From the NCBI GenBank assembly GCA_000320545.1, contig ADNK01002608.1, forward strand, positions 85,675 through 149,674: a DNA stretch of 64,000 nt, read 5' to 3'. The first letter of the stretch is position 1; every line of letters starts with the position of its first letter. The position numbers and the translations under genes are program-made. Of this stretch, positions 13,400 through 64,000 are shown piece after piece. The notes below the pieces were generated by a model, which was not told where the DNA came from, made no database searches, and was given only the letters and a program-made list of their open reading frames with translations. Source of the DNA: Bigelowiella natans CCMP2755 (taxonomy: Eukaryota > Protista > Cercozoa).

Positions 13400-14560
13400 G
13401 GTAGAAGTCATTTTTTTCTTTTCAATCCCAAGCACATGCATTTTGTACAGAGTGGTTTGATACCAACAACGTTCCGGGCTCATCATGCGAATGATCGTGC
13501 GGCACATACACAAAACAACCACACAATCACATCATTGGTCACAAACGTACATCTTCCCACCACGCAACGCCCATGCAAAATTAGATGATGTCATCAATCT
13601 AGCAATCATAATCAAGGGTAGAGACACCAGCACAGACGTTGTATGCCTAGGCAATCAAGTGGTTGCTGCATTGACTAGCTAGAGATTCCATGCGAAGCAA
13701 ATATGCAAAACTAGACTGTGTCAAATCAAAAAACCAGAGCAATAATCATCGATTCTGTCCGCAAAATCGCACGTGATTTGATCATTAGTCGTACGCGACG
13801 CCGCGCGCGCGTCTGGACAACTCCGTCAAACAAACAATGAGAAAATCTGGTCCACGCCGTGACCCTGCGTTGATGCTGGCTTGCTAGCGGGCTCCAGTGC
13901 TGCTGCTAGCTTGACAAAGCGTCTAGCTGTGTCTCCAGAAAACATGCAAGTGTTCGCTCTCAAGTGTAGAAGAGATTATTTTCAAATTTCAAATCTTTTC
14001 GCTGCAAACTTTGGCCAAACTTGCTTGCCAAGCACGATGAGCCACCAGAGCACGGAGCAAGCGAGCGCGATGCCCAATGTGACGACTAGACGATCAGACG
14101 ATGTTGTTGTCACTGGCTAGCTGGCTCTAGAGCTACGGGCTACACCCATGATTGTTGCGAGAGACCGTTTTTCATGGCATGATCAACCTCTGCATGGATG
14201 CACACGCGTGTGCTATGATCATTGCTGTGAAGATGCGCAAGCTCACCATCTTCGTTTTGCCACGTCATCACCCAGCTGTTCTTTGAAAGGAAATTCTCTG
14301 AAAGACAGCACTGATGGTTCTTCAGCTCTCCATTCATGTGACATGCAGCCCAATTTCAGTCGCAAGGCCATCAAGGGGATGCGGATGAGGCTTTCGTGAT
14401 CAATTTCAATGAAGAGGAGGAAAAAGAAAACGTGTGCGGTGTCGACGAAGTGACCCGCATCGTGGAGACGGCTGATGAACGAACGAATGAATGAACGAGT
14501 GCACTGGTCAACGAAGTGATTTCAATGGTGCCATGAGGATTTTTGGGCTTTCTGACTCAT
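13400..14560. other. TA-depleted intergenic block (degenerate repeat)
   Basis: Residual TA mainly in CTAG (e.g. gctagc, tctagc, actag); CpG retained (cgccgcgcgcgcg). Confidence 0.65.
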
Positions 14561-15222
14561 CCACTTCCTCCTCGATCAGCAAGACCCCCATGATCAACGA
14601 GCTCTCCAGGGGAGGGAGGAAAAAAAGACAGAAAGCATGCTCATGTCGCAGTGGTTAAGTCCCCTCGGTTATTCACTTTGCGACAACACCTGTGGTGCAT
14701 TCTAACTCTATTTAAGGAGTCTCTCCGCATTTCCCGCCAAATATTTATTGACACAAAATAAATAATTACCCTTTGGAACATCCCTCCTTTACTCTGTAAG
14801 TGTGAGAGAGGGGCCTCAGTAAAGTGTGAAAAAATAACGTTTGTGCTCTATGGGACGAAGTGTTGCGGGATGTTTGGGGAATTTTAGTCATTCATGTTCT
14901 TGTCAGAGGTTATTTATCTGGTGCGATGTGCACTGTGAACTTTTAGCACACATCGTGTTCGAATAAATTGCTTATGGTTGATTCCATTAGATAGCAAGAT
15001 GGATATGCTCTCCACGGAGCTCAAAGTTAGGTATGCAGAGAGAAAGATGAAGGAAAGAAGAACATATTTTTGTTTGTTCTTTTGAGAAATGAGGATGGTA
15101 GGGTTGGCCGTGATGATGATAAGAATGGCGCTGTTTGGCACGATTTTCTTCTTTATGCTGATCTTCATCTTGAAGTTTTGAACATCATATTATTGTTTTT
15201 TGTTGGTGCTGGTGATGCATCA

Positions 15223-27902: not shown

Positions 27903-28560
27903 CCTGAAGAGAAATTATTGTCAAAGGACATGCTGTAAGTCTTTCAAGAAAGAATTGTAATTTAGGAATGGCTAAAGGCATAAGCGTTTTCAGAACTTGG
28001 CACGGCAAACAACTTATTACGCTGGTGGGCAGGACTCTCGTGTGTTTGCCCCTTCCTTGTTTTTTGTGAGAAGCTCTCAACTTGTATTCGTGAGTGAGGA
28101 GATGGAGACAAAAGTGTAGGGGAGAAAATGTATCGCCAATCTATTATTCCGTGTCGCAGGTGCAAATTCGAGAACGAACGAACAACGAAAATAGAGTTAA
28201 AGATCCATCGGATGTTTCGTTTTCGAGAAGGGTTGATGAGGGTAATTATTATGTGTATTTGTGAAAGCCTTAGCTTCCTAAGATCAAAAATTGCGAGCGC
28301 GGTCCTCGTGGAGGTCCGGTCGCGGGTATTGGACATAGTTTTCAATTAGCACAGAAACCGATTCAGCAAAGCTTCATAATCTGGTTTATGCCTCCTGAGC
28401 AAGGACAAATATTGGAACAAGCGACTCATGTGGGACATTGAGATAGATCTCATTGCCATGAGACTTCCAGGCCTTTGAAATTTTTTCCAAATGTAAAATG
28501 GCTCATTTTGGTTGCAGCAGATGTGTTTTGGCCTGTAGTTTTCCTTTTCATCGATTTCAA

Positions 28561-29700
28561 TTTTTGTCCTTTTCGTCTGTGTTTTCACGAAGCGACAACA
28601 TCATCTTGGCGTCCTGTCTAGTCGTAGTGCATTTTCACATGCGCGTTGAGCGAAATCAAGAGCATGATCATCATTTCATGGTCAGGTCCGAAGCAAGAAT
28701 GCATCGGACCAGCAGGATCGAATCGATGAGAGTCTGGGTGAATCACAGACACAGCACAGCAATGTGATGTGTGCACAATGTGCACATCATGCTGCATGTC
28801 CATCATGTGAAAGTGGGCACAGACGGTCGGGCCCACCTAGCTAGCTAGCTAGCTAGCCACGATTGGTGAAACTTTCCAGCTGTTTGTTGATCGACCACAC
28901 CTCCAAAGAGTTGCACGAGCGTGACCACCATTTTCAGTCTCAACAAGCAAGCTGCATGCTCACATGGTTTGGTGGTGCTGCCAGTCGACACCAGCTAGTT
29001 TTGACCATCAACACCAACAGGGCTAGAGGGTGCTGACTGCACGTGCTGACAAGTCCTCGCAATGATTTTTGTTTGCAGGTGCGGCTTCGTGCAAATGCAC
29101 GTCTCCCACGTGGTTCTTGCGCACGTTGATTTTTGCACCAACCCAGCTCCAGAGCTAGCCAGCAATGCTCAGTTCAATGTTCAACCTTCAGTGTTCTTTG
29201 TCTTTCTTTCTTTCTTTCAAACAAGCAACATTCCACTTGCACACGCTCGTGCACACAGAGCCTTCATGGCTACATGGCGTACGCACACATGCGAACATGT
29301 GTTGCGCGGCATTTTTTGTGTCATGTGTTGTGAACACAGACATGACACCAAAAAGGACCCACACACGCAGTGGACAACATGTGTGCTGATGGGCTGTGCG
29401 CCATGGAGCCTTCTAGCCTTTGTGGCTACACATGATAAAATCCGTGGCACGAAAAGTTCTGACATGGCAGGTGTTCTTGTGACCTGGCTACTGGTGGTCT
29501 AGCTAGCTGGTGGTGTTGAAATCGGGGTGGCTATGGAAACCCCGCCTAGCACGTCACAGCTAGTGCGTGCGGACAAACACAACACTACGCTGCAGAGACG
29601 TGTGACATGGCGCATTGGTGGCACACTAGCAGCTCGCGCGCATGCAAGCATGACTAGATGATGGCGGGGTCTACTCACTGCAAGCATGTTGAACATCACT
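28561..29700. other. TA-depleted intergenic block (degenerate repeat)
   Basis: Hand count: 26 TA in 1140 bp, of which 16 CTAG and 6 CTAC/GTAG. Confidence 0.8.
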
Positions 29701-35565: not shown

Positions 35566-35891
35566 TGTTGCGCGTAAGGTGTTCACAGGCCGAGGCGCTA
35601 CGTGCACAAGTAGGCAGGGGGGGGGAAAGGCACGTTTGCTTCCTTTTGAAGAGTTGTGTTTATTTTTATTAAAGATTATATTTTTATTAAATCGTGCACT
35701 GCGTAATCATTCGCGAAGCTTTCGCGAATGCCGCCGCACGTGGGGCAGCACACTTCCGGTGTGCTGCCATGAGTCCCGCCGGAACCCACGTGCCTATGCT
35801 GTATTAATATCTACGTTATCTATATTCTATATCCGCGACAACCCCTTTGTTGTCGCACGTGACTTGTGCCCGCGTAGTGGTACGCGCTACA
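35566..35891 (-). repeat. 3' LTR of the Gypsy element
   Basis: 326 bp, identical to 40956-41281; 11-bp imperfect terminal inverted repeat TGTWGCGCGTA; minus-strand AATAAA signals near 35655-35690. Confidence 0.97.
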
Positions 35892-35899
35892 CCTCCCCC
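35892..35899 (-). other. Polypurine tract
   Basis: Minus strand GGGGGAGG directly abuts the TGT start of the 3' LTR; a second purine tract (AAGGAAGGAAGGAG) lies about 15 bp upstream. Confidence 0.75.
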
Positions 35900-35942
35900 A
35901 AGTCACGTTGCTCCTTCCTTCCTTCCTTATTCCCTTAGACCT

Positions 35943-38900
35943 TCATCGCTTTCGGAACTTCACCAACCACCAGGTAATAGATTCCTCTCTAACCTTATCT
36001 CCTTTGTCGCTTACCCAGAACTCACCTTCGTCCTTAGGTTCGTGTCCATACCAGCCCTCTGCATCAAGGTCCCCCAGGACCTTATACCAGTGCTCAAAGG
36101 GTAAGTCGGGAACAGCTAGGTAGAGTAGCTGATATTTTCCGTCCTTTATTTTCATAGCTACCCTCTCCATATTTCGTAATCCAGGGTAGCCTAGATAGAC
36201 AATCTTCATGCGCCAATCGTCGTTCACCCTGACCTTATTGTTTCCATATTCCACATCGAACTTAGGTCGGGGTCCTAAACAAGGCATTGCTCGCTCCCAC
36301 ACAGTAGGGTTTACTTTAACATCCTCTAGGAGCTTCTCACCGATATCATAATTCTTTAGGTGACTGATGTGGCGCAAGGTGACCCTGTTCCCATCATAGA
36401 TGTAGTACTGCTTCCTCCCCTTCCTCTCGGTAACCTTTGCAACGCCACCCCAGAAGGGGTCTTGTTTATTTCTCGATCTCAGATTTACCTTGGCCCTAAC
36501 ATACTGTCCTTCCTTTAGAACTCGGCCATCGTACGGGACCTTCTCGTCTTCGCTCTCGGTATCGTCGTCGTTGTCGTCGCCTTCTTCCCTCTCCTTATCC
36601 TTGATACCTCCCCCAGACGTGAAGGTGTCGTTTACTAACCCTTGTATCTTGTCTGGTGTGGTGCTATTTATCCTGCTTAGGTTGGCCAAGGTGCGGTGGA
36701 GTCGCTCTACCTTGGAGTTGGACTGGGCATAGTATACAGGTGAGGCATCAATATTAGGGTGTGGTAGCTGTAGAAGAGAGGTCTCATTATCCACATGTAA
36801 CTTCTTTGGTATCTTGTTTATGCTAACTTCATCAGGGATAGCCTGGAGCTCAGACTCCCAGGTACGGTAGCAGTTAGTAAGCCTCTGCTTATATAAGCCT
36901 TTGTTCTTCTTAGCAACGTTGACCTTGATAATCTTTTTAACCCAGCACTTTCCAGTGGCCACATCAACGAAGGTAAGGTAGTGATAGCCATCGTACTTAT
37001 AAACATCAATTTGCACGATATCTAAGAAGTTCCTTGCTTTGATTTTCTTAGATGCACGGCTCTTGCTGGACTCCTTGGTGGCGACGCCTGCCGCCTTCAA
37101 GCTGGAGCACCTGCAGCCACGCAGGTATGTCCTTATCTCTTTTAGCTTGTAGGGCCAGTAGTAATGGTAGAGTAGAGCAGTGATATGGTTTTCTCCTACG
37201 TGTGCAGGTCCATGGGCGGTAAAGAGAAGGGCTCCCCTGGTCCGCCGTGGCACGTAGGTACGCCTAACATTATTAGTGTATACATATATCCTATCACTAA
37301 GTACCTCATGCTTGTGTTTGTATTTATCCAGGTGTTCTTGAAGGTGCTGGAGCTCCTCTGGCTCAGGCAGGAAGTCGCCGTCCTCGAAGGTAATCGCGTT
37401 AACCATAGGGGTGACCTGGGTAGGGACTTTCTTTTCGAACAGCCTGCTGAAATAGTCAGCAAGCTGCTTGTCTCCTGGTGCGTAGACCACTGTCCTCTTG
37501 TCCCTAAACTCTTCCGTGTCCGCCCTCATAGCTGCATACTCATCGTTAGGCGCTTCGAGCTTGCGGTCGATGCCTAGGAGGGGCTTGTGGTCAGTCATTA
37601 AGGTGAAGCTGGGCACCGACAGCAGGTAGTATCTTAGTTTCCTCTGCGCCTCAGTCATGGCTTTATACTCTCCTTTTGTAGGGCTGTACTTGGCCTCAGC
37701 TGCTGTGCAGGCCCTGCCCCACACCCGTATGATCTGCTGGTCTTGGGTAAGTACAGCAGCCATACCTAGCTTAGACCAGTCTGTCCATAGGGTAGCTGGT
37801 CTAGTAGTGTCTAGCTTAGCATTCAATAGGGTGTTGCTGCATAACTTTATTAGGTTATCGAAGTGGGCATCAAGGCCAGCCTTGGCCCACACCTTAGCGA
37901 AGCTGAGGCCTACAGAGTTCTCCTTCCGGTAAGCAGTAGTAAAAGCAGCTGCAGTCCTAGCGTAGGTAGGGGAGAACCTACGTAGTATCCAAGCTGCAGT
38001 CTGCAAGAATGACTTTAACTCCTTTGCATTCTTAGGTTTAGGGGCTTGCTGTAGTGCTGCTACTTTCTCGGGGTTTGGGGTGATGCGGCCTTGCTCCAGG
38101 TAATATCCACACCACTTGATTCTTGTAGCTAGGAATGTACACTTCTGCAGTCTAATAGTAAAACCGAAGTGTGCAAACCTAATAAATATATTTTCCAGGA
38201 GGAAGATCTGAGCGACGACTGTGTTGGTACATATTATGTCATCATCCACATACACAAACACAAACACCCACAACACAGACGCCATCCCATCATGTGTGTA
38301 TGCCCTGTAGTTCTGACTACTGAACGCATCCCCTGATATGCTTAGGCCGTAAGGGAATACGACGAAGTGCCACTTCCTGTGCCTGCTGGAGAACGCGGTA
38401 ATGGGGCGGGAGGTTTTGTGGATGGGTGTCTGCATGTATGATTCATTTTTATCTAGGGAAGAGTAGTATTTGTATCCTATGACGTGTTCAATAACGTCAT
38501 CTATCCTTGGTGTAGGTGTCTGGATCCTCTTTATTACTCGGTTGTGGCGGATGAAGTTGTGCGCCAGGCGGAAGAAAGGGTAAGTAGGTTTCTTAGCTAG
38601 CACATGTCTCACGTTCCATGGTGAGTTGCTTGGCTCTATCTTCCCTTCCTTTGCCCATTCATTGATCTGCCACTCTATCTTTTCCCAGTCCGCTTCCGGT
38701 CGCCTATGTTCTGGGTCATTGATGATGCACTCTTCGTATCCCTTCTTTAGCTCGATCTTTACTGGGGTAAGCTTGCTGGAGGGCTTCGTCGTCGGCTTGG
38801 TGATGTCAGAGTACTTCTCGTTTAATATTTTATTAATGTACTTTTTGCCTTTGTCGATATCCCAATCATCAGCTGGGGGGGTCTTGTCCAGTAGCTCCGT

Positions 38901-40916
38901 TATCTGTCGGATGGTCTTGCCGGGGTTCTTCTTCCGTAGCTCGGTAGGTGTAGGTAGCTTGTTGTCCGCTAGGTCCATAAACTCTAACGCATTAACGCTT
39001 GACTCAGAGGTCCACTCGTCAAGCCGTATCATGTTCTGGCTGATGGTCCTGCCTGACTTCTTTGGCAACTTAGCAAAGTATATCTTGTGATTGTAGAATG
39101 ATATGATCCCCCCTAATTTTTCTAGGGCATCCTGTCCGAGGAGTAGTTCCATGGATAAAGTCATGGCTACTCGGGTCTTGATTTGGGTCTCCGCGTCGCT
39201 GCCAGGTATCTGTAGCTTTAGCATTAGCTCACCGACGGTCTTCATGGAAGAGCTTCCGTCTGCTTGAGCATATTTACGTTCTTTCTTAGTCACTTGATCC
39301 AATAGTCCTAACCTTCTTACTGTGCTTAGGCTTATGAAGGACTTCGGCATGCTGCCACTATCCCAAAGGGCAGGTAGTTTCTTGTAGTCTCCGTAGCTGT
39401 CTTTAACTTTAACCTTGGTCATAGCAACTTTGATAGTCCTGTTAGCGTCTTCGTCATTAATGTTGCATACTCCTAAGTTCTTTATGTCGTCTAGGGTCAT
39501 GGGCTTGTCTTGGTCCTGCGTTGCTGGTACTGCTGTCTTCGTCGGCGCCTGCTTAAGGTGATCTAATATTCCGTTTATCTGCTGCTGTATAGCATTGATA
39601 CTGTTCTGCTTTTTGTTCTTATATTTATTGTTCTTCCCGTTGTTGCTGCCTTGCCATTTGCTGTTGTTATATCCTTGTCCTCTGCCTTTCTTTCTCTTTA
39701 ACTTCTCGTAGTGTTCGTTGAGCTGCCTGATCGTCATCCTGGGTCGTCCTTCTTTCCTGTCTCTGCAGTCTTTAGCGGTGTGTTTCCCTTTACGTGAGCA
39801 GTATCCGCAACGTCGGTTACCTTCCCTGTCCTTGTACCAGTCTCGCTGCGGCTTAATAGCGTTAATGTTTCCTATGCCAGGTACCTTAGGGCTGGTAAAC
39901 TTGCGGTCCTGCTCCTGCTCGCGTAGGGATATAGCCTGCACTGCTGCCTCCATCGTGGTGTAGCCTTTCTCCGTAACGTAAGTGGATTCCTTTATCTTTA
40001 ACTTGAACTCTTCAAACCTTGCCTGATCATCACCTGTGTTGTAATTAAAATCATGTAGTTCGTCGATCATATCCTGGAAGCGCGTGGCAAAGTCTCTAAC
40101 AGGTTCTCTCTCATGCTGCATCATTGCTCTGTATTTTCTAATAGCCTGGGGTAGGGAGTTAGCATCCTGTTCATTTACAAAAGCCTTCATTATCGCCTCA
40201 ACGTCTCGTAGCCCACTAACTGTAGTGTGTATTTTCTCTAGCTGCCTGATCCGGGTCCTGCCTGTCTCGTAAAGGTCCATGGCTTGCTTTATTATAGCTA
40301 GCCATTTGAGCTTGTCGTTTTCGGTGGGGTTAGGGGTAAAGTCGCAGAGTATACTCCTAGCGTTCTTCCACCACCTCCTTGCCTCACCTCTTTTCCCGTT
40401 GTATTTCGTTATCATAACCGGTGCTGTTTTAACAGACATGAACTGGGTGTTCCGCTGTACCGGCTGCTGCTGCTTGACGGTGCTCTGGGTCGTCCCCCGC
40501 GAGGCGCCCAGACCCCCGTCGTTCCTAAACAAAGCTGCCCACTCTGGAGGTAAGTCTGCTTCGTAATCCATGATGTCCTGCATGATAGCTGCCCAAACAT
40601 CATGTGTCTGATACTTGTATTCTATCGATACTTTCAGTTTGGCGTAGTTGCTCGCCCTGGGTCGCAAGGCTCGTAATGCCATTACGACCTTCTTGCTTTC
40701 GGCGGCCACGTCCTCGTCGTCCGCCTCGTAGAAGTTCTCCAGTGCCTCTGCTGCTGCATCTGCTTTCTTAATCCCGGGTGCTGGTCCCGGCGGTGCCTGT
40801 GGAGGTGTTCCTCCTCCTTCCTTAGCGTCCGTATCGCCCTTCCTTTCCTGTTTCTGCTCGTGCCCTTGCACGGCCTGCGAGCCAAAGTCCTGCTGTTCTT
40901 CTAGCTGCTGTGACAT
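35943..40916 (-). CDS. Gag-Pol polyprotein, 1657 aa, no frameshift
   Basis: Zn knuckle CGYCSRKGKHTAKDC (about 39765-39809); protease LWDSG (about 39360); RT YVDD (about 38240); RNase H TDWS...EYKA...TDHKPL...ADYFSR; integrase HGPAH...CRC, QID...HVDN...KVER; SH3-like CTD QDPFWGG; extra C-terminal domain of about 130 aa. Confidence 0.97.
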   Translation of the reverse strand: MSQQLEEQQDFGSQAVQGHEQKQERKGDTDAKEGGGTPPQAPPGPAPGIKKADAAAEALENFYEADDEDVAAESKKVVMALRALRPRASNYAKLKVSIEYKYQTHDVWAAIMQDIMDYEADLPPEWAALFRNDGGLGASRGTTQSTVKQQQPVQRNTQFMSVKTAPVMITKYNGKRGEARRWWKNARSILCDFTPNPTENDKLKWLAIIKQAMDLYETGRTRIRQLEKIHTTVSGLRDVEAIMKAFVNEQDANSLPQAIRKYRAMMQHEREPVRDFATRFQDMIDELHDFNYNTGDDQARFEEFKLKIKESTYVTEKGYTTMEAAVQAISLREQEQDRKFTSPKVPGIGNINAIKPQRDWYKDREGNRRCGYCSRKGKHTAKDCRDRKEGRPRMTIRQLNEHYEKLKRKKGRGQGYNNSKWQGSNNGKNNKYKNKKQNSINAIQQQINGILDHLKQAPTKTAVPATQDQDKPMTLDDIKNLGVCNINDEDANRTIKVAMTKVKVKDSYGDYKKLPALWDSGSMPKSFISLSTVRRLGLLDQVTKKERKYAQADGSSSMKTVGELMLKLQIPGSDAETQIKTRVAMTLSMELLLGQDALEKLGGIISFYNHKIYFAKLPKKSGRTISQNMIRLDEWTSESSVNALEFMDLADNKLPTPTELRKKNPGKTIRQITELLDKTPPADDWDIDKGKKYINKILNEKYSDITKPTTKPSSKLTPVKIELKKGYEECIINDPEHRRPEADWEKIEWQINEWAKEGKIEPSNSPWNVRHVLAKKPTYPFFRLAHNFIRHNRVIKRIQTPTPRIDDVIEHVIGYKYYSSLDKNESYMQTPIHKTSRPITAFSSRHRKWHFVVFPYGLSISGDAFSSQNYRAYTHDGMASVLWVFVFVYVDDDIICTNTVVAQIFLLENIFIRFAHFGFTIRLQKCTFLATRIKWCGYYLEQGRITPNPEKVAALQQAPKPKNAKELKSFLQTAAWILRRFSPTYARTAAAFTTAYRKENSVGLSFAKVWAKAGLDAHFDNLIKLCSNTLLNAKLDTTRPATLWTDWSKLGMAAVLTQDQQIIRVWGRACTAAEAKYSPTKGEYKAMTEAQRKLRYYLLSVPSFTLMTDHKPLLGIDRKLEAPNDEYAAMRADTEEFRDKRTVVYAPGDKQLADYFSRLFEKKVPTQVTPMVNAITFEDGDFLPEPEELQHLQEHLDKYKHKHEVLSDRIYVYTNNVRRTYVPRRTRGALLFTAHGPAHVGENHITALLYHYYWPYKLKEIRTYLRGCRCSSLKAAGVATKESSKSRASKKIKARNFLDIVQIDVYKYDGYHYLTFVDVATGKCWVKKIIKVNVAKKNKGLYKQRLTNCYRTWESELQAIPDEVSINKIPKKLHVDNETSLLQLPHPNIDASPVYYAQSNSKVERLHRTLANLSRINSTTPDKIQGLVNDTFTSGGGIKDKEREEGDDNDDDTESEDEKVPYDGRVLKEGQYVRAKVNLRSRNKQDPFWGGVAKVTERKGRKQYYIYDGNRVTLRHISHLKNYDIGEKLLEDVKVNPTVWERAMPCLGPRPKFDVEYGNNKVRVNDDWRMKIVYLGYPGLRNMERVAMKIKDGKYQLLYLAVPDLPFEHWYKVLGDLDAEGWYGHEPKDEGEFWVSDKGDKVREESITWWLVKFRKR

Positions 40917-40932
40917 TGTTAGTCAAATCGTT

Positions 40933-40950
40933 TCCCGTGTGTGGAAGCCA
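40933..40950 (-). other. Primer-binding site (18 nt)
   Basis: TGGCTTCCACACACGGGA lies 5 nt inside the 5' LTR. Its complement ends in CCA with G73 and U1-A72 geometry (Asp/Glu-type tRNA; identity inferred). Confidence 0.65.
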
Positions 40951-40955
40951 AAGGT

Positions 40956-41281
40956 TGTTGCGCGTAAGGTGTTCACAGGCCGAGGCGCTACGTGCACAAG
41001 TAGGCAGGGGGGGGGAAAGGCACGTTTGCTTCCTTTTGAAGAGTTGTGTTTATTTTTATTAAAGATTATATTTTTATTAAATCGTGCACTGCGTAATCAT
41101 TCGCGAAGCTTTCGCGAATGCCGCCGCACGTGGGGCAGCACACTTCCGGTGTGCTGCCATGAGTCCCGCCGGAACCCACGTGCCTATGCTGTATTAATAT
41201 CTACGTTATCTATATTCTATATCCGCGACAACCCCTTTGTTGTCGCACGTGACTTGTGCCCGCGTAGTGGTACGCGCTACA
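40956..41281 (-). repeat. 5' LTR of the Gypsy element
   Basis: Identical to 35566-35891; followed on the + strand by TSD AACA. Confidence 0.97.
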
Positions 41282-42139
41282 AACAAACCCTCACGATTTC
41301 TGTGGTTGCTCTTTCAGGCACAGAGACGTTCGTTCCATTCATGGGTGAGTCAGCACGTTCCATGACCCTCTTAACCCAAGCACTGAAAGTGCTCCGTTCG
41401 TTCACACGTTCGTTCAAGGACGAGTCAGGGACTCACCCTTCGCACACGTTGCCTGCACGTGCGCTGATCGTGTTGCACTCACATTGACTGTTGTTGTTGG
41501 TCAATGTTCCAATGTTTCTTTCTTTCTTTCTTTCACGTCTCACTTTCAACCGCTCCAACGGGGTTATTTCTCCCTTTTTCTTTGCTTCTTTGGTGGCTGA
41601 CATTCCTGTGCGTCGTGATCTACATGGCTGACTGGCTAGCTGAGAGGTCACGGCTAGCTAGCTAGACGGGTGAGTCAGCGAGTCCCATTCGAATCACTTC
41701 ACTCACGTGTTTGTTCGTTCTGTGACATTTCTACACTTTCAACCGCGTTGGAATTGCTCTGTTCGTTTGCTCATTCATTGACGGGCCATCGACCCTTTCC
41801 ACCGCGCCATCATTGGAAGCGGGAACCACTTCGTGATCGACTGTGATCATGAAGAACACAGAGCTCACAGCAGCATCGCTAGATCGTAACGCTTCATCCA
41901 GCTGTGGCACAGCATGCATTTGGCAGTCGCCATGTTGTTCACGTGACAACTTCAAATGTCTTCATCATGTTGAAATCATCAATGTGTTCCAGTGTTGGGA
42001 GCGTGTAGAATGCACATTTGCATCGCATATGCCCCAACGACAAGGTGCCGGCATGTTAGCATTGAAGATGCCTTGCAAGAACATGACAACGACCACATTG
42101 CTCCACACAGTTGTGGGCAATCATGCATTGCGAGGGCAT

Positions 42140-44060
42140 CTACGGGCTGCTAAGAAGATCTGAGAACGCATACCAGTCCATTCCAGACAAACGCGAGATG
42201 TCATCAGCTCTAATTGAGTTGCCTATTTCGATGATCAACACATTACTGAATTCGTCCATAGTCATGCAATTTAAAGAGTGTTGCACGAAATTAAAAGTCC
42301 AAAATCTTTACGCCTTTTGACCTACCGTCACTGCTTAGAATCTTGAATAATGCATCGACAGCAGCTTCAGTCAGTTCTTCAGCGGAGATTGCCTGATGCG
42401 ATGCATTTTAAAAATGAATACTTTTCACAGTGAAAATAAATCAATTGAGAAGATAAAAATCCAGTTCTTTACTATCAAAAGGGATAGGGATCATAGACCA
42501 CTTCTAAGATCGTGCGGATTATGTCTTACATAGGCTATTGATATTTTCGCCTCCGGAAGAATCATTTAGATTCACAATAATCAGATCGAGCACATCTTAC
42601 TTATAATTTAATGCCACCAATAAGCCCCACCAATAAGCCCCACCAATAAGCCCCACCATCATCCCCACCTTATTGAGCTTTTCCCTTTCACTTGCATTGA
42701 GGTAGAAAGGGTCTCCTAGATTCTAAAACCAATCGTTATCACAGAAGGCGGTAAAACAGATCATATCTGAACGTTTTGCTCCAATGGGTGACGATTGTGA
42801 TCATCATCAGCATGCTGCTGCTGCTCCTGCTGCTCTTACTAGAACTGACAGGGCTCACTCACTTCACACTCCATACCTTTCTTCTTGCTGCTTCCTTCCA
42901 TTCACTAAGTTCCGCTGGCTTATTCAAAATTACCGTTTTTACCTAGGATTGTGATTTTGTATTAAGAGAGATTCGTAGGTGAAAGAAAGGGAGGACTTTA
43001 TTCTCCATCTCTTGGCCATAAGGCTTCAGAGGCCATTCAAACTGTAAGTCTCGAATCTGGGTGATTGATCCAAAAAAAGATTAATTATGGTGAGGAGATT
43101 TTTTCACAGATATAACAGCTACACCACTAGTGCCGCAACTACAACTACGGCTCCAACAACAAATACTACTATATCTACAAGAACTTGTACATTTTCTTTG
43201 AATTGCTCTTTAGATATGGAAGACGAGCCTTTAAGTAATCGGCCCATTAAATTCTCGCTAAAAATATTCGTTGGATTTTGTAAATAATTATTGCTATGGA
43301 TTACGAGGACTTAAGTGGAAAGCTGGATGAACCTGTTTGCACAGGTTCCAATGCATAGATATTGTTCACATACGTTCAAGTGTGAATGTACACAACCATT
43401 TTTGCGCAAGCGTGCTTGCGTACGTGCGTTCGTATGCGCTTGTTGGTTTATTTGTTTGTGATTCAGTCATGAAAATAATATTTTCGCGAACGGTATTAAC
43501 CCATCGATTTGGCATGATGCCCGGTTTGCGATCTTTCCATAGCACGATGATGTTGCTATGCGTCCAAATAAGCTCACGGTGTCATATTTTGTAACTAAAG
43601 TTAAAAGTAGATTTAGATCGAATAAATTCGTACAAGATGTTTCTACCCGGAACGTCTGCTGCAACAGCATTGTTCTTCATCAAAGTAAGTGCAGAAGAAG
43701 ATGTTGCCCATGCCAGGGGGACGCCATTCATTACATTTCGCCGGCTAACGTGTGTTAACAATGTAGATATCAATTGTGGTGATGGATATGATTATGAAAT
43801 AAAAATGATAGTCATCGTGATCATAATCTTTTTGACGTAAAATTGCTAAAGTAAATTTGAATACTTGATTTAAAATGCGATCTTAATTAATGATTTCCCA
43901 TGTAAAGTTTCAACCTTATACTTTTAGATAAAGCATTTTGAGTATTCATTGATCCTGTTGCTGTACCAAGCAATACAATCGTACCAGCTACAAGAAGCAA
44001 AGCATGGTAATGTGTCCATTGATTTGCTCTTTGTGACCGCAGAACAGATGAATGGAGCAT
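42140..44060 (-). CDS. Putative multi-exon protein of unknown function with signal peptide + transit-like + twin-arginine presequence
   Basis: Phase-compatible exons: MLHSSVLRSQRANQWTHYHALLLVAGTIVLLGTATGSMNTQNALSKSI|SRRNVMNGVPLAWATSSSALTLMKNNAVAADVP ... IRDLQFEWPLKPYGQEMENK|VKTVILNKPAELSEWKEAARRK ... AISAEELTEAAVDALFKILSSD|GNSIRADDISRLSGMDW...*. Normal TA content, unlike its flanks. Middle exons not fully resolved. Confidence 0.5.
42614..42652 (+). repeat. 13-bp tandem repeat x3 (CCACCAATAAGCC), probably intronic
   Basis: Three exact copies followed by a partial fourth. Confidence 0.85.
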
Positions 44061-44416
44061 CGTGCCTTTGCCTAATCACCAAGTGGGTCAGAATTTTTTA
44101 GGAAGCTATGTTTCTGTCTATAAACATCCAAGTAGTCAACGTGCATGAATCAGCCCTCACTAGAGAGCAAGCACTACGAATTCATGTCAATTACCAATGT
44201 GAGGTTTCTGTTCTGCCACGCTCTCAGGTTTCTGGCTGTGCGACGATTTTCGTGACAGCTGCATCGTCGCAATGATTTGCATGTCGTATACACAAAACGA
44301 CATGCATTTTGCCCCTGACTGGATCGTCGATAATTCGATTCTCAAAAGGAAAAGGCCCGTGAGCCTCACCTTCATGAACCATCCCGTTTTTCTAGTTGCG
44401 ACATCACATGCGTTTA

Positions 44417-46610
44417 GTCGCAAAGTGAACAGTGTGATGACGCTCCAGACGCTGTGGCATCGGGTGTGACGACGCCAGAACTCTCGACACACTCACGTTT
44501 CAGAATTGCCTGTGGTTTTTTCGTTCGCGCAGTTGGCCTGCATCCCACTCGCGTTCTTTGCAACCGAATCGGCATCCAGACACATGGTCCTTGACCTTTT
44601 CTTGCTCGTTTTCCTTTTTTGCTTTCGAGTGCCAACGAAGTGGCCTGGTGGCACGTGACAGGCACAGGTGTTGCACAGGCGGAGGCACGTCATCGCCACG
44701 CGCAAGTCGGGACTTTCCACGCACCACTGTGACCTCTGGACTCTGGACCTCCCTGGCTTCACCCCAGGGATCGAACCTGACCTAATCCTGGAATCGTGTG
44801 TGACCAGGTCACCATGTTGCGCGTGAGGTGCTCACAGGCCGAGGCGCTACGTGCACAAGTAGGCAGGGGGGGGGAAAGGCACGTTTGCTTCCTTTTGAAG
44901 AGTCACATTTATTTTTGTTGAAGATCATATTTTTATTAAATCGTGCACTACGTAATCATTCGCGAAGCTTTCGCGAATGCCGCCGCACGTGGGGCAGCAC
45001 ACTTCCGGTGTGCTGCCATGGGTCCCGCCGGAACCCACGTGCCTACACCATGTTGACATCTACGTCATCTACATTCCATGTCCGCGACAACCCCTTTGTT
45101 GTCGCACGTGACTTGTGCCCGCGTAGTGGTACGCGCTGCAACCATGGACACAATCAGGTGCGGCAGTCGCAAGCAAAGGCGTGGCTTGAGGGCATCGCGT
45201 GTGCGTGAAAGCAACTGGACAAGCCAGTCACTTGGCCACGTCACAACTCAACAAAGACACAACTCAAGTTCACGTGCAAGTGACCTTGTTCCCTCTGGCC
45301 CTGTCTTTCTCTGCCTTGTCACCGTTGTTGCACTCCAGCACTGAGGTCAGGTGGTGGGGGAGTGGTGCAAAAGGTGGGAAAAACTTTTGATCATTCACAC
45401 TGAACGATGCCCACGGTGAAACGCAAAACCCAGGGAAAGCAAGGCCGAAAAACGTGACTTTTCCACTTCCAGACTTGCAAGTTCAAGTGGTCGTTTGGGT
45501 TGCCACAGGAGCGTGTGCACTCAAGCCAAAAGCTTGTGTGGGTGCTCTTTGAAGCCTCGTGGTCCTTTCACTGTGGTTCATTGTTCCTCTTCGTTGCGTT
45601 CATCACGACGTTGCTCCTCGCAAACATGCACTCTGGCACTAGCAAGCGGCAAGGCTCTGGAGGTGCCAGGTGCTTTCTGTTGTGCTTGTCCTGCGATGTG
45701 TTCACCTGTCAAGAGTTTCATCGTTCACTGCGGCGGGAGGAGGCACCAGGGCAGTCCAGCAGTGCCTTGTTGGTGTTGGAGTGCTTTGCGTCCAAACCGC
45801 GATTCGAAGTGCGTGGTGCAGCAGGAGTGGCAGCAGTGCCAGAGCGACGTGCGGGCGTTTGCGAAGCTGCGACAAGCAACAAGCAGTCCAGCAACAAGCA
45901 ACAAGCAACCAGCACGAGACAACAAGAGTGCAGGCGAAACGAACACGCATGCGACTTCGGCAGCGCAGTGCCAAAGCTTCCTTGTGCCACGAAGGAAGCA
46001 ATGTGCCTCGACGTTGTGCTGCGCCACGCTGGCACGTTGCTGAGAGCTTGGTTCACAGTGATCGACAACGTGAAATTGACCTCGAGCTGCAGGCACGAAC
46101 AATCACACTTGGTTCGACACAGACTTGAGACAGCCTCCTCCTGTCCCCATCGTCCCACCTCTGGACCTGGCTGGAGCACTCGCCTCCATCGCGCATCGCG
46201 CACCGCCCACTTCCCAACTTTCAACAGTTGGTTCTCACGTTCTCACCACTCCAGCACTCTGGCACTGAAGTGGTGAACATTGCCAGGTTGGCTGAGGAGT
46301 TGGTGACCCAAAACAGCAAAAGCAATTGCCAGAACAGGGCAAAACACACAAAGTGCAAAACAAGCGAGAGACTTGAGAGGTCCCACCTTTTCTCCGATGC
46401 AAACTCTTGGCGGGGCGGCTTGAGGTTCGTGTCCACGAAACGTTCCAACAAGATGCAAAAAGAACCGAAAATTTGAGAAGTTTTGCGGCAACAAATGAGT
46501 GTTTTCCAACTAGATGGAATCTCATTGAGGGTTGGACACGTGCTCATGGTCAACGTTTCTGCAAGGAGAGCTGGATGCAGGTGACAAACAGTCCACGTTT
46601 TGAATGACCG
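44417..46610. other. TpA-void intergenic block, probably a decayed repeat, hosting the solo LTR
   Basis: 1 TA in 44417-44814 and 2 TA (both CTAG) in 45141-46610; CpG abundant. Confidence 0.9.
44815..45140 (-). mobile_element. Solo LTR of the same Gypsy family
   Basis: 326 bp, 23 substitutions (all transitions) versus the intact LTRs, own 4-bp TSD ACCA (44811-44814, 45141-45144), no internal sequence. Confidence 0.96.
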
Positions 46611-46916
46611 AGGATAGAAGGGATTTTTGCAAGTAGCGACAGGTCTAAAAGTTGTCTCTTAATGAAAATCGAATGCCGATTTAATCGTGTGCATTGCCAC
46701 GCAGACAATGCAACTTCGCGCCAAATTGCACCAGGGATTTCAGATCAAAACTCAACTTCAATGAAAACCATCATCGATTTCTGATGTGAAATGATCATCT
46801 GATGTTGGTATAATCCATCGTCATAAGGATGACTTAGTTGAAAATTACGCTTGGTTTTCTTGTTTCTACTGATTGTATTTCGATCTTAGAGCCGAGCAGA
46901 GCTGAATGAGCAAGGA

Positions 46917-48852
46917 ATGTCGGAGACTTCGGGATCCTCAAGGAAGCGCCCAAGGCCTGTTTCTCCGTGTGACGATACCAAATGGGTGCTTCTAGCATGT
47001 AAGGGGAAAGCTTGGGCCTCAGAATGTCAGGCATTCTGCAAATCCCTACCCTCTGAACTGGTACCTAAATTTCGAGAGTTATTGGAAAAGATCATCGCAG
47101 GAAAGTCGTCTACAGGGTGCGAAAAGGAACCAAATAGAAGAGAAGAAGCCCACACCAAGAAAGCTAAAGAGAAAAAAGAGACGGTAAATCAAGATAAGAT
47201 AGCTTACGTAATGGGGCCTGTGACGGCTGTCTCCCCGAGGTAAGCATGCAAATACAGCAACACCACTGCAGTAGCTCACTCTCGTGTTTTATCAATATTA
47301 ATCGCAGAGGCAAGTGGAATCTAACATTTACAGGCGACAGTAACTTAATTATGGAACTTAAGGAGAAGCGAGTGGTGGTTGAAGCAACCAATTTGAAACG
47401 CATCATTACTGTGCCGGACAACAATGGGCTGTATATTTACGTTGGCCTGCAACTCCGGGATCCCGTTACGCTTGGTAAGAGCAAGTATGGCATTGTCCTT
47501 TTCAAATTGCATGTCAAATCTAATCCCAAAGTCGAATGGGGAGAGGCTACTCCGAAGCTCCCACAAAGTGTACAGAAACTAAAATCAGAAAAAAAATCGG
47601 CGGCTGAAATCCTTGCCATGAGCTGGAAGGTGCCAATCGAGAGAGCTAACAAGACTTATTTCGCAAGCTCTTCGTCAAAGTAATCACATTTTACGTGCAA
47701 TGTTGCAAATATCTGAAAATGGTCATCATGATTATCGTATTTCTCTCATTATCGTCTCAGTTCGTGTGTACTACTACTGTTGTCAGACATGCAATCGCTT
47801 GCACCGTGAAGGCTAACAGTGGAGCACTGTATCCCCTCAGAGGTGTGTAGCAGAAGTGGTTTTAGTATTGGTAATGATGATGATGATGATGATAATGCTT
47901 CTGGAGCGACCATCCGGCTGCGGTTTAGCGCGCACCTCATCTCGCTTTGCTGGGATGGGACCCTTTTGTCAATTGTGTCGTATGTCACCTGAGTCGCCGT
48001 GCGGTCCTCGTCGCTCTCATTACACCGTGTGAGACTGCGTCCGTGCGTGATGAGGATGATATTTTAAGTACTGTAGTGATTGCAGTAGGTGGTGGTGGTG
48101 GTGGTGGTGGTGGTGGTGGTGGTGCAAGTAGCATTGAGTACAGTTGTTGCCCAATCATACGTTATCATATCTCACCACATAACTTAATACCTACCTGCTG
48201 TTCTGACAATACCTCTCAATGAACCTTTTCCCGTCCCTTTCTCTACTTAAATAGGAGGTATCTTCTATATTGGAAAGCCTCTCGTGTTCCTCCCTCGAAA
48301 GGAAATCGAGGAGATTAAGGCTGCAAGAGGAGGGACAATAGGATCATACTTTGATCTTTGCGTCGAGCACGATGGGACTCTATACGAATTCGGAATGATC
48401 AATAAGAGCGAGCAAGGCCCTATTCAAGTAATATGCTACTAATACTACAACTTCTAATACTCCTCAACAAATACTTGAGGTATATAATTGCCATTTAAGT
48501 AAATTGTAACAGTGTTCCTCATAGTTTACCATTGCAGTTTTGATATCACTGACAATATCGTGCATTTGTGTAATACAATTATAATTTACCAGGGATATGT
48601 CCAAAGCCTCCAAGAGCTTCGTAGCGCTGATGAACGACGGAGTCAAAAGAAAAAAAACAAAAAGAGAACAGATGATTCTGATGATGACGCGGGCGAGGAT
48701 GGGAGCAGAGAAAAATGCGGAGAACACGAAGACGATGGCGAAAACGAGGAGGAGGAGGAGGATGGTGATGATGATGATGCAGATGACTCTAATGACTCGG
48801 ACTATGTGGCAGATGATGAGGAGCGTCCCTGCGCCGACGAATTTGAATCCGT

Positions 48853-63067: not shown

Positions 63068-63840
63068 TGATAAGATTGCTCATAAGATTACTCATTTGCA
63101 CATGATTTACGAAACAAATGTGCTTTGAACCCAAGACAAATGTTGAAACTGCACCAATGACACCATGTGTCATGTCGGTTATGTCGAATGATGGTTTGTG
63201 TAGATGGTAAGATTATTTGTAATTTTTTGCATCTTTGATGTTGCTTTCTGGGATGTACGTCGAAGAGTCTTAGATTTAATCATTTTTGCATCCCTTTGAT
63301 TCAGAAAACAACTTCTGCTATGAACATCATTTTCCCATCTTTATTAATCTTTTGATTTCTCAACTTCCTTGCCAAAGAGTTTTTCCCAAAATGATTAAAA
63401 ATGAACTTGCACAATGAATGTGCAACTTGAACTTGTGGTTTTTGGCGAATGAAATGAGGCGCATGTCTTTTGTTTTTTCGTTCAAAAGCACATCATTTTC
63501 ATTTGCACACAGCGCCTTTGTCGAAAAATTGCATTCGCACATGTTCATGTTTTGCAGGTGTGTTCATGCACCATTGGTGCATGCGTTCAACACATTCTAG
63601 CTTTCATTGACAGCTGCTGCATTTCACTCCATGGCAGTGACAAAGAAACGATCTGGTAGCATGGCCATGGGCGCCCGACGGCGGGTTGGGGTTGGGGTTG
63701 CGGTTGGGGTTCTCTTGCGGTCGAAACGCAGGTCGAAGTGAGAAAAACCGTTGGCACAAAATTGGACAAAAGTTTTTTTTCGATCAGGAAAAAAATGTGG
63801 ACAAACATCACTGAAGATGTCTACAGGTTTTGAGAAGGCC

Positions 63841-64000
63841 CAGGGTCTGCGTCGAGGTCAGGGTCAGGGTCAGCGTCAGGGTCAAGTAGGTCAGGGTCAG
63901 GGTCAGGGTCAGGTAGGTCAGGGTCAGGGTCAGGGTCAGAGTCAGGGTCAAGTAGGTCAGGGTCAGGGTCAGAGTCAGGATCAGGGTCAGGTCAGGTCAG
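63841..64000 (+). repeat. Telomere-variant hexamer array (TCAGGG)n with degenerate units, continuing off the right edge
   Basis: 13 exact TCAGGG units plus TCAGAG/TCAGCG/TCAGG variants; G-rich strand points to the window end; TTGGGG x3 at 63683-63711; no TTAGGG. Confidence 0.8.

Follow-up and report, generated by a model that had tools for sequence, protein, structure and literature searches.

In Bigelowiella natans, a hypermutation process that changes TpA into TpG or CpA has been shown in mutation-accumulation lines (Mettrop et al., 2026, bioRxiv 10.64898/2026.01.13.699255). One integrated giant-virus region and one virophage region together carried 231 of the 302 nuclear point mutations of that preprint. 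All but one of these changes (230 of 231) were A to G or T to C and were placed on TpA by the authors, and the rate reached ~1000x background, in some lines only (Mettrop et al., 2026). The same study mapped 124 clusters of 1-kb windows that are depleted in TpA and enriched in CpA+TpG, and reported 324 TpA-poor predicted coding sequences (CDS) among which transposable element (TE; RT, DDE) and viral Pfam domains are enriched; an ADAT2-like adenine deaminase is proposed by its authors, who frame the targets as viral or foreign ("invading") DNA (Mettrop et al., 2026). Positions above 2x mean depth were removed from the calls, and high-copy elements therefore probably lie outside the callable genome of the preprint; its text has no occurrence of "CTAG" or "context", and considers no context beyond the dinucleotide (Mettrop et al., 2026). 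Here we analyze 64,000 nucleotides of B. natans CCMP2755 (contig ADNK01002608.1, positions 85,675 to 149,674 of the forward strand; hereafter the window), in which a block at 45141-46610 has lost nearly all of its TA dinucleotides.

The published footprint comes from the same species, and the block resembles it in the change from TpA to TpG/CpA and in the combination of TpA depletion with CpA/TpG enrichment. Unlike the published targets, the DNA erased here consists mostly of unique spacer, plus two solo long terminal repeats (LTRs). We consider it very probable that the block is the saturated long-term footprint of B. natans TpA to TpG/CpA (A:T to G:C) hypermutation on a 2.3-kb divergent spacer. 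The hypermutation process itself is already published, and the block is one more footprint of it, a saturated one; new here are the anatomy of the locus, the hierarchy of flanking-base contexts and the landing preference of a Gypsy family.

A TA-depleted block in a divergent spacer

The block (1470 bp) contains TA only twice, starting at 45640 and 46511 and each time within CTAG, so that a recount bears out the two positions given in a preliminary description of this DNA. From its base counts (A 362, C 390, G 401, T 317) 78.1 TA are expected, which falls in the range of ~70-80 estimated earlier, and the observed/expected (o/e) ratio is 0.03. When the typical TA o/e of the window (0.81) is taken as a Poisson baseline, 63 TA are expected in 1470 bp and the probability of two or fewer in the block is 7e-25. 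The TA-free runs of 871 and 510 bp found here are the two longest of the whole window; further runs measure 442 bp at 14214, 368 bp at 44415 and 213 bp at 28625.

The loss of TA is accompanied by an excess of its transition products. CA and TG reach o/e ratios of 1.59 and 1.53 (mean 1.56) across the block, and the gain in CA+TG matches the loss of TA, while CG is ordinary (o/e 0.72). GC content is 54%, vs ~41-45% in the surroundings. Both cut-offs of the preprint are passed (TpA at most 0.43, here 0.03; CpA+TpG at least 1.52, here 1.56). A CpG-island-like domain was considered for the block and rejected, as a CG o/e of 0.72 is no CpG enrichment. An assembly artefact is ruled out: contigs from two independent DNA runs of 2025 span 45111-47134 and 45111-47955 with 0 differences, and read depth over block and flanks is 130 vs 117 in one run and 82 vs 71 in the other.

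The TA void extends beyond the block. It runs from ~44290 to 46612 (~2.3 kb), fills the spacer that separates two divergently transcribed genes, and is made up of five pieces. From left to right these are a single-copy piece (44290-44814; 4 TA, TA o/e 0.14, CA/TG o/e 1.45/1.34), a solo LTR of a young Gypsy family on the minus strand (LTR-A, 44815-45140, 326 bp, 13 TA remaining), a second single-copy piece (45141-45773; 1 TA, in the CTAG at 45639-45642, TA o/e 0.03, AT o/e 0.33), an old solo LTR of another family on the plus strand (LTR-B, 45774-46226, ~450 bp, 0 TA) and a third single-copy piece (46232-46612; 1 TA, within the CTAG at 46510-46513). The single TA between 44416 and 44814 agrees with the one TA counted earlier in the 400 bp left of LTR-A. 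The void is mostly unique spacer DNA and is apparently silent.

Searches of the 91.4-Mb assembly returned only self-matches for the three unique pieces of the void (1.55 kb in total), even at 70-75% identity. The focal block is ~70% single-copy; the other ~30% is LTR-B, a member of a dispersed family. The link to multi-copy DNA implied by the preliminary description holds only in part, as ~70% of the block is single-copy.

The many overlapping open reading frames (ORFs) of the block are explained by the loss of TAA and TAG stops along with TA, as had been proposed; the stops that remain are TGA and two TAG only. Frames of the length of the longest one (272 codons) arise in 6% of dinucleotide shuffles. 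Pfam searches with ten ORFs of the block gave sub-threshold noise only, a six-frame search of the genome for paralogues found the block itself as sole match, and phmmer with the 272-codon frame against 1.84e9 representatives yielded two matches, both to tandem-repeat proteins over many short stretches, which we judged spurious. With a frame within the shuffle range and neither a Pfam family nor a paralogue nor a credible homologue, a coding origin of the block was rejected. An RNA gene was rejected as well, as an Rfam search over 44000-47000 returned nothing at E <= 1. The 1.55 kb of single-copy void DNA thus gave no viral, TE or any other protein signal in these searches.

Polarity of change at two LTR families

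The window also contains an intact young Gypsy element (35566-41281, minus strand), with a target-site duplication (TSD) AACA, a 1657-aa gag-PR-RT-RNaseH-(weak IN) ORF and a TA o/e of 1.13; the nine TA reported earlier at 37801-37860 of this ORF were confirmed. The ORF shares a 90%-identity cluster with EP00466_Bigelowiella_natans / jgi Bigna1 models (EukProt). The two 326-bp LTRs of the element are 100% identical and serve as the unmutated reference (master) for LTR-A. Genome-wide, 40 other young Gypsy LTRs were scored among 685 candidates and were also 100% identical, and the master alleles make up at least 99% of LTR read depth in both DNA runs. This identity and read depth make the master a reliable ancestor for the solo LTR-A.

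LTR-A has TG..CA termini and a 4-bp TSD, ACCA, at 44811-44814 / 45141-45144. Of the 23 positions at which it departs from the master, 21 fall at TA sites. Twelve changes are TA to TG or CA in LTR-A relative to the master; at four sites the master has TG and LTR-A has CA, which implies that both states derive from TA; and at one site TA is kept in LTR-A only. All five changes in the master lineage are one-way, from TA to TG on the plus strand of the window. The only two non-TA changes in LTR-A are a T>C and an A>G. The conversions in LTR-A occurred after insertion and hit both strands, without evidence of strand-coordinated clustering (7 runs in 16 events vs ~9 expected). In total the count of TA fell from 24 in the master LTR to 13 in LTR-A, and of these 13 survivors seven are CTAC or GTAG.

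TA o/e is 0.78 in LTR-A, compared to 0.0-0.15 in the unique DNA on either side. With flanks so much more depleted than the element, the spacer must have been TA-free already when the element arrived, and the process must have continued afterward. It is thus shown that Gypsy landed in a domain already free of TA and that around half of the TA in the solo LTR left behind has disappeared since then. Dated by the two non-TA changes in 268 non-TA positions and the background rate of the preprint, the loss in LTR-A amounts to ~1e-8 per TA nucleotide per generation, ~50-fold above background, a very imprecise figure. It is far below the bursts in the mutation-accumulation lines and fits an episodic process, with the same imprecision.

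The second family, LTR-B, gives an independent view of polarity. It is ~440 bp long with TG..CA termini and is present at 70-93% identity at at least 32 loci; the search with the whole block first gave only a ~110-bp module elsewhere, which proved to be the start of this family. On either side of the copy in the block stands GTTGG (45769-45773 / 46227-46231), a probable 5-bp TSD, and perfect 5-bp TSDs (TGCGT, ATCCG, ATTGT, TCGTG) flank four other copies. No internal region of the LTR-B element was identified. Among four close copies, nine sites at adjacent columns show only TA, TG or CA states, and of the 11 doublet differences with two states, 7 are CA/TG, with every other type seen at most once. 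As read from the sequences, such multi-state sites are the trace expected of copies that independently resolved an ancestral TA. With 0 TA, LTR-B is older in the void than LTR-A. All nine sampled copies of LTR-B lie within voids, one of them in 3.1 kb without any TA.

Together, these data show that TA was replaced by CA/TG and that the direction is loss of TA. The preliminary description had viewed the block as the saturated end state of a TA-converting process and had taken it to fix the direction of change, as RIP-like chemistry can only add TA. The saturation stands on the match between CA+TG gain and TA loss, on the 21 of 23 LTR-A differences at TA and on the precedent of the mutation-accumulation lines, and the direction, from TA to CA/TG, is now polarized by the comparison of LTR-A with its master and by the three-state sites of LTR-B.

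Some further observations concern the arrangement of LTR-B copies. On another contig (L003) a young Gypsy LTR (780-1107) lies ~100 bp from an LTR-B copy (1188-1609) inside a TA void, the same pairing of two LTR families as in the window. Several LTR-B copies in the same orientation occur within a few kb at C1193:122651-131011 (G000) and at C3571:40150-43761, and two copies on C3571 are 3.2 kb apart. Such closely spaced copies in one orientation may bound remnants of the full element.

Gypsy landing, flanking bases and the neighborhood of the void

The landing of the young Gypsy family, which has ~340 insertion sites in the assembly, was assessed with 30 of its LTRs fetched elsewhere, which represent 17 independent insertion sites, and with 500 bp of external flank. 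Flanks averaged a TA o/e of 0.43 or lower at 13 of these 17 sites (binomial P ~1e-10); 0.43 is the 5% genome-wide quantile of the preprint and is reached by 9.7% of windows in the DNA studied here. Both Gypsy insertions of the window fit this pattern: solo LTR-A sits within a void, and the intact copy borders a different one, which occupies its right flank (41282-41781; TA o/e 0.27). Since the young elements are identical and TA-rich (o/e 1.13), the voids predate the insertions. We infer that TA voids are preferred landing sites of the currently active Gypsy family; the preference is well supported in this sample, and its cause would be either targeting or survival of insertions.

Two simpler accounts of the preference were tried and rejected. 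The void flanks are not old Gypsy copies into which younger ones nested, as they share only microsatellite-like matches and no long repeat, and the 4-bp TSDs show a weak C at position 3 only, so that a target motif does not explain the preference for voids. The integrase of the element is weakly recognizable by a match to the PFV integrase (E = 0.013, PDB sequence search). The ~130 aa after the integrase (35946-36350, minus strand) had no match in Pfam, PDB or ESM Atlas, and a single-sequence AlphaFold model of the Gypsy C-terminus was unusable (pLDDT 36).

The bases flanking TA strongly affect its survival. We compared tetranucleotide densities in 15.9 kb of pooled void DNA (from the window and from flanks elsewhere) with those in 86 kb of ordinary DNA. 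The void/normal ratio is 0.85 for CTAG, and it drops to 0.13 for CTAA/TTAG and for CTAC/GTAG, 0.12 for GTAC, 0.07 for GTAA/TTAC and for ATAG/CTAT, 0.05 for TTAA, 0.017 for ATAC/GTAT, 0.015 for ATAA/TTAT and 0.007 for ATAT, a ~140-fold fall. The trinucleotides listed in Table S2 of the preprint were tallied as well. On the 3' side of the presumed edited A, the 236 de novo events of TpA type have T 81 times, A 74 times, C 58 times and G 23 times; with a 3' G at ~21% of sites in ordinary DNA of this genome, 3'-G events reach 0.46 of expectation (P = 3e-6). CTAG is spared beyond a simple 3'-G effect, and the rule must thus involve at least a tetranucleotide. The de novo CTA class (T>C, 19 events) exceeds its complementary TAG class (A>G, 4 events; P = 0.003), an unexplained asymmetry, and the other three complementary pairs of contexts are balanced.

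Four T>C events in Table S2 have ATG or ATT contexts, which are not TpA. The two hypermutable regions do not contain all TpA-type de novo events: nine are listed elsewhere, including two on scaffolds that lack virus-like ORFs. Genome-wide, microsatellites of the form (CTAG)n are very frequent, with an example in the window at 28839-28855, and their abundance fits CTAG as the surviving TA context. The 17-mer CTAGCTAGCTAGCTAGC occurs 685 times forward and 690 times in reverse in the genome, vs 13 and 15 times for a reversed control.

On the right, the void ends at 46612, ~300 bp upstream of the ATG of the adjacent gene. The first TA beyond this edge that is not in CTAG is at 46615, and five TA follow in the next 70 bp. 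The gap of 304 bp before the ATG (46613-46916, plus strand) holds 13 TA (o/e 0.47) and is presumably the promoter and 5' untranslated region of this gene; over its final ~970 bp the void has a single TA, at 46511 in CTAG. The right gene (46917-48721, plus strand; ATG at 46917, RNA contig from 46967) is expressed and spliced, with GT..AG introns at 47238-47305, 47680-47786, 47841-48252 and 48428-48592 according to RNA contigs, and its TA o/e of 0.81 agrees with its earlier description as normal; a Pfam search with its first exons found no family. The left gene (43501-44204, minus strand) is likewise expressed and spliced, with introns at 43595-43646 and 43745-43914 and probably also at ~44073-44195, and its transcription runs away from the void. 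In one transcriptome both neighboring genes give spliced contigs, and no contig lies over 45157-46812.

Other TA voids of the window are found at 14214-14656, 28530-29420 and 41282-42080, and the few TA that survive there are again mostly CTAG. The window ends in a telomere-like array (63841-64000), built of TCAGGG units and of variants such as GTAGG and AGTCAGG; a short TTGGGG-like stretch is present at 63686-63710, and TA is scarce in the final 600 bp of the window.

Targeting, alternative explanations and related systems

A unique spacer was erased, identical repeats were spared, and a repeat that landed in the spacer was erased in turn, which argues for targeting by place and not by homology or foreignness. 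Targeting thus looks place-based, independent of repeats or viral origin. The mutator would be aimed at a place, not at repeated or recognizably foreign sequence; that place is a putative silent chromatin domain, probably bounded by active promoters, and the same property of the domain may attract the integration of LTR retrotransposons. In the chemistry proposed in the preprint, the A of TpA would be deaminated on either strand. A/T flanks would be converted fastest and sites with a 5' C or a 3' G more slowly, and CTAG would be nearly immune. Tentatively, TA voids may be a distinct, heritable compartment of small silent domains, often whole intergenic spacers, and not the scars of particular invaders. 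If so, a putative mark, some chromatin or DNA-modification state, would both recruit the integration of active LTR retrotransposons and license the mutator ("trap and destroy"), a suggestion of which we are far from confident.

Several points weigh against our main reading, a hypermutation footprint aimed at a place. AT is depleted too, with o/e 0.39-0.41 across the block and 0.33-0.49 in the three right-hand pieces of the void, compared to 0.59-1.11 in 15 other TA voids; collateral loss through conversion of ATA/TAT would predict only ~0.8, and the extra AT depletion of the block is unexplained by TA conversion alone. No ongoing mutation was seen at the locus, where the block is without convertible TA and contigs from both DNA runs of 2025 match the reference exactly. 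Protection by flanking bases is relative and not absolute, as two CTA sites in LTR-A were converted to CCA. The background of the landing test is one window plus the published quantile, not a genome-wide scan, and the bias could reflect survival in junk DNA or a TE-rich neighborhood; no chromatin-reader domain is recognizable by Pfam, PDB or ESM Atlas in the C-terminus or integrase of the Gypsy polyprotein. The left part of the void does have RNA contigs of low depth (44228-44400 and 44459-44798), and the silence of the block rests on the contigs of a single transcriptome, with raw RNA reads that cover the neighboring genes only 0.05-0.26x.

A rival explanation is a defense directed strictly at repeats or foreign DNA, as in RIP or in the "invading DNA" model of the preprint. 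All of the block would then descend from an old insertion of a transposon or virus, recognized by homology or small RNAs, with the unique parts as remnants decayed beyond recognition. Such a history would accommodate the ~30% of the block that is LTR-B (at least 32 loci) with a second solo LTR abutting, the confinement of all nine sampled LTR-B copies to voids, and the enrichment of TE and viral Pfam domains among TpA-depleted CDS (Mettrop et al., 2026). However, for 1.55 kb of the void the 91-Mb assembly gave no second copy even at 70-75% identity, and neither a Pfam family nor a paralogue nor a homologue among 1.84e9 representatives was found, the unique flanks are more saturated than LTR-A and hence were erased before it arrived, and hundreds of identical young Gypsy copies are unmutated though highly repeated; we regard this defense as possible, but doubtful. 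The changes in LTR-A count against selection, by which TA-free DNA would be kept for a function in the divergent promoter region (stiffness or nucleosome exclusion, or avoidance of TATA-like starts or of TA-targeting transposons). In favor of selection, the void sits exactly between divergent genes with its end ~300 bp short of an ATG, CTAG survives in it, and AT too is unusually scarce. Yet newly inserted LTR-A, which has no role at the locus, was converted at TA and almost nowhere else, LTR-B copies resolved the same ancestral TA to TG or CA according to locus, the same changes arise de novo at ~1000x background in the laboratory without selection, and voids of 1.5-3 kb occur at many unrelated loci, all of which makes selection very improbable.

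Two further alternatives concern the chemistry. We give slightly less credence still to RNA editing, in which retroelement RNA hyperedited by an ADAR-like enzyme would be fixed upon reinsertion and the DNA would not be mutated in place. Two parts of the void derive from LTR retrotransposons, all five changes in the master lineage are TA to TG on the plus strand of the window, and the genome has one ADAR/ADAT1-type deaminase locus, as this explanation would have it. Against it, unique DNA that is no retroelement is erased as completely, the block has CA and TG products in balance, which means that both strands were hit, LTR-A was changed after its insertion and on both strands, and the events in the mutation-accumulation lines are in-place changes in single-copy integrated DNA; in addition, the preference of ADAR for a 3' G is opposite to the 3' G found here as least mutable context. 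An attack on T instead of A, by thymine oxidation at TpA (to 5-hydroxymethyl- or 5-formyl-uracil, TET/JBP-like) followed by mispairing with G and T to C change, is improbable in our estimation, though less so than RNA editing or selection. As TA is self-complementary, A to G and T to C cannot be told apart from the products, and the strand asymmetry among de novo events (CTA 19 vs TAG 4, P = 0.003) could point in this direction. In dinoflagellates 5-hydroxymethyluracil is enriched at TpA, and 5-formyluracil induces A:T to G:C transitions. A search of the genome for Tet_JBP gave no match, though the controls were also without match and the genes have introns. Against an attack on T, the action of TadA/ADAT on A34 after U33 fits the TA rule, and six loci of this type exist. 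An ADAT2 homologue is favored in the preprint (Mettrop et al., 2026).

Hypermutation of a place thus remains our preferred reading. The published mutator is very recent and is presented as antiviral, and the present locus narrows the possibilities for its targeting: a unique spacer without detectable foreign ancestry can be saturated with the loss of TA. The hierarchy of flanks (ATAT most depleted, CTAG spared, 3' G disfavored de novo) offers a profile with which candidate deaminases, or enzymes that modify thymine, can be compared, and if voids are indeed a compartment, the tetranucleotide specificity of the enzyme could be read from the near-immunity of CTAG. If confirmed genome-wide, the landing preference of Gypsy would link the choice of integration site to the mutator and would provide hundreds of dated natural "reporters" of its rate.

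Like repeat-induced point mutation (RIP) of Neurospora and other fungi, the process consists of context-specific transitions that leave long dinucleotide-distorted tracts in mobile-element DNA, and it is possibly a genome defense. RIP changes C to T mainly at CpA, creates TpA, lowers GC, and needs duplication and a sexual phase. Here, in contrast, TpA is destroyed, GC is raised, CpG is untouched, the DNA is mostly single-copy, and the process runs in vegetative cultures. RIP was accordingly rejected for the block, where TA is nearly absent, GC is up to 54% and most DNA is single-copy, and by the hundreds of identical Gypsy copies that are unmutated.

With TadA/ADAT2-ADAT3, ADAR and APOBEC3 the process shares clustered transitions that follow a neighboring-base rule, although these deaminases normally act on RNA or single-stranded DNA. 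TadA/ADAT act on A34 directly after an invariant U33, and ADARs favor a 5' U and prefer a 3' G. This preference of ADAR (G > C, A > U) is the reverse of the order found here, with 3' G as the least mutable context, and hyperediting of the ADAR type was rejected, given that CTAG persists in voids and that a 3' G among de novo events reaches only 0.46 of expectation. The candidate deaminase loci in the genome are one of the ADAR/ADAT1 type (A_deamin) and six of the TadA/CDA type.

In the accumulation of an active element in a small, special fraction of the genome, the landing of Gypsy resembles LTR elements targeted to heterochromatin (MAGGY, Ty5) and the traps formed by piRNA clusters, and as in trap systems the insertions are inactivated after landing in that fraction. 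Unlike the chromoviruses of the MAGGY type, this Gypsy has no detectable chromodomain or other reader, and unlike in silencing traps, inactivation here would be by mutation.

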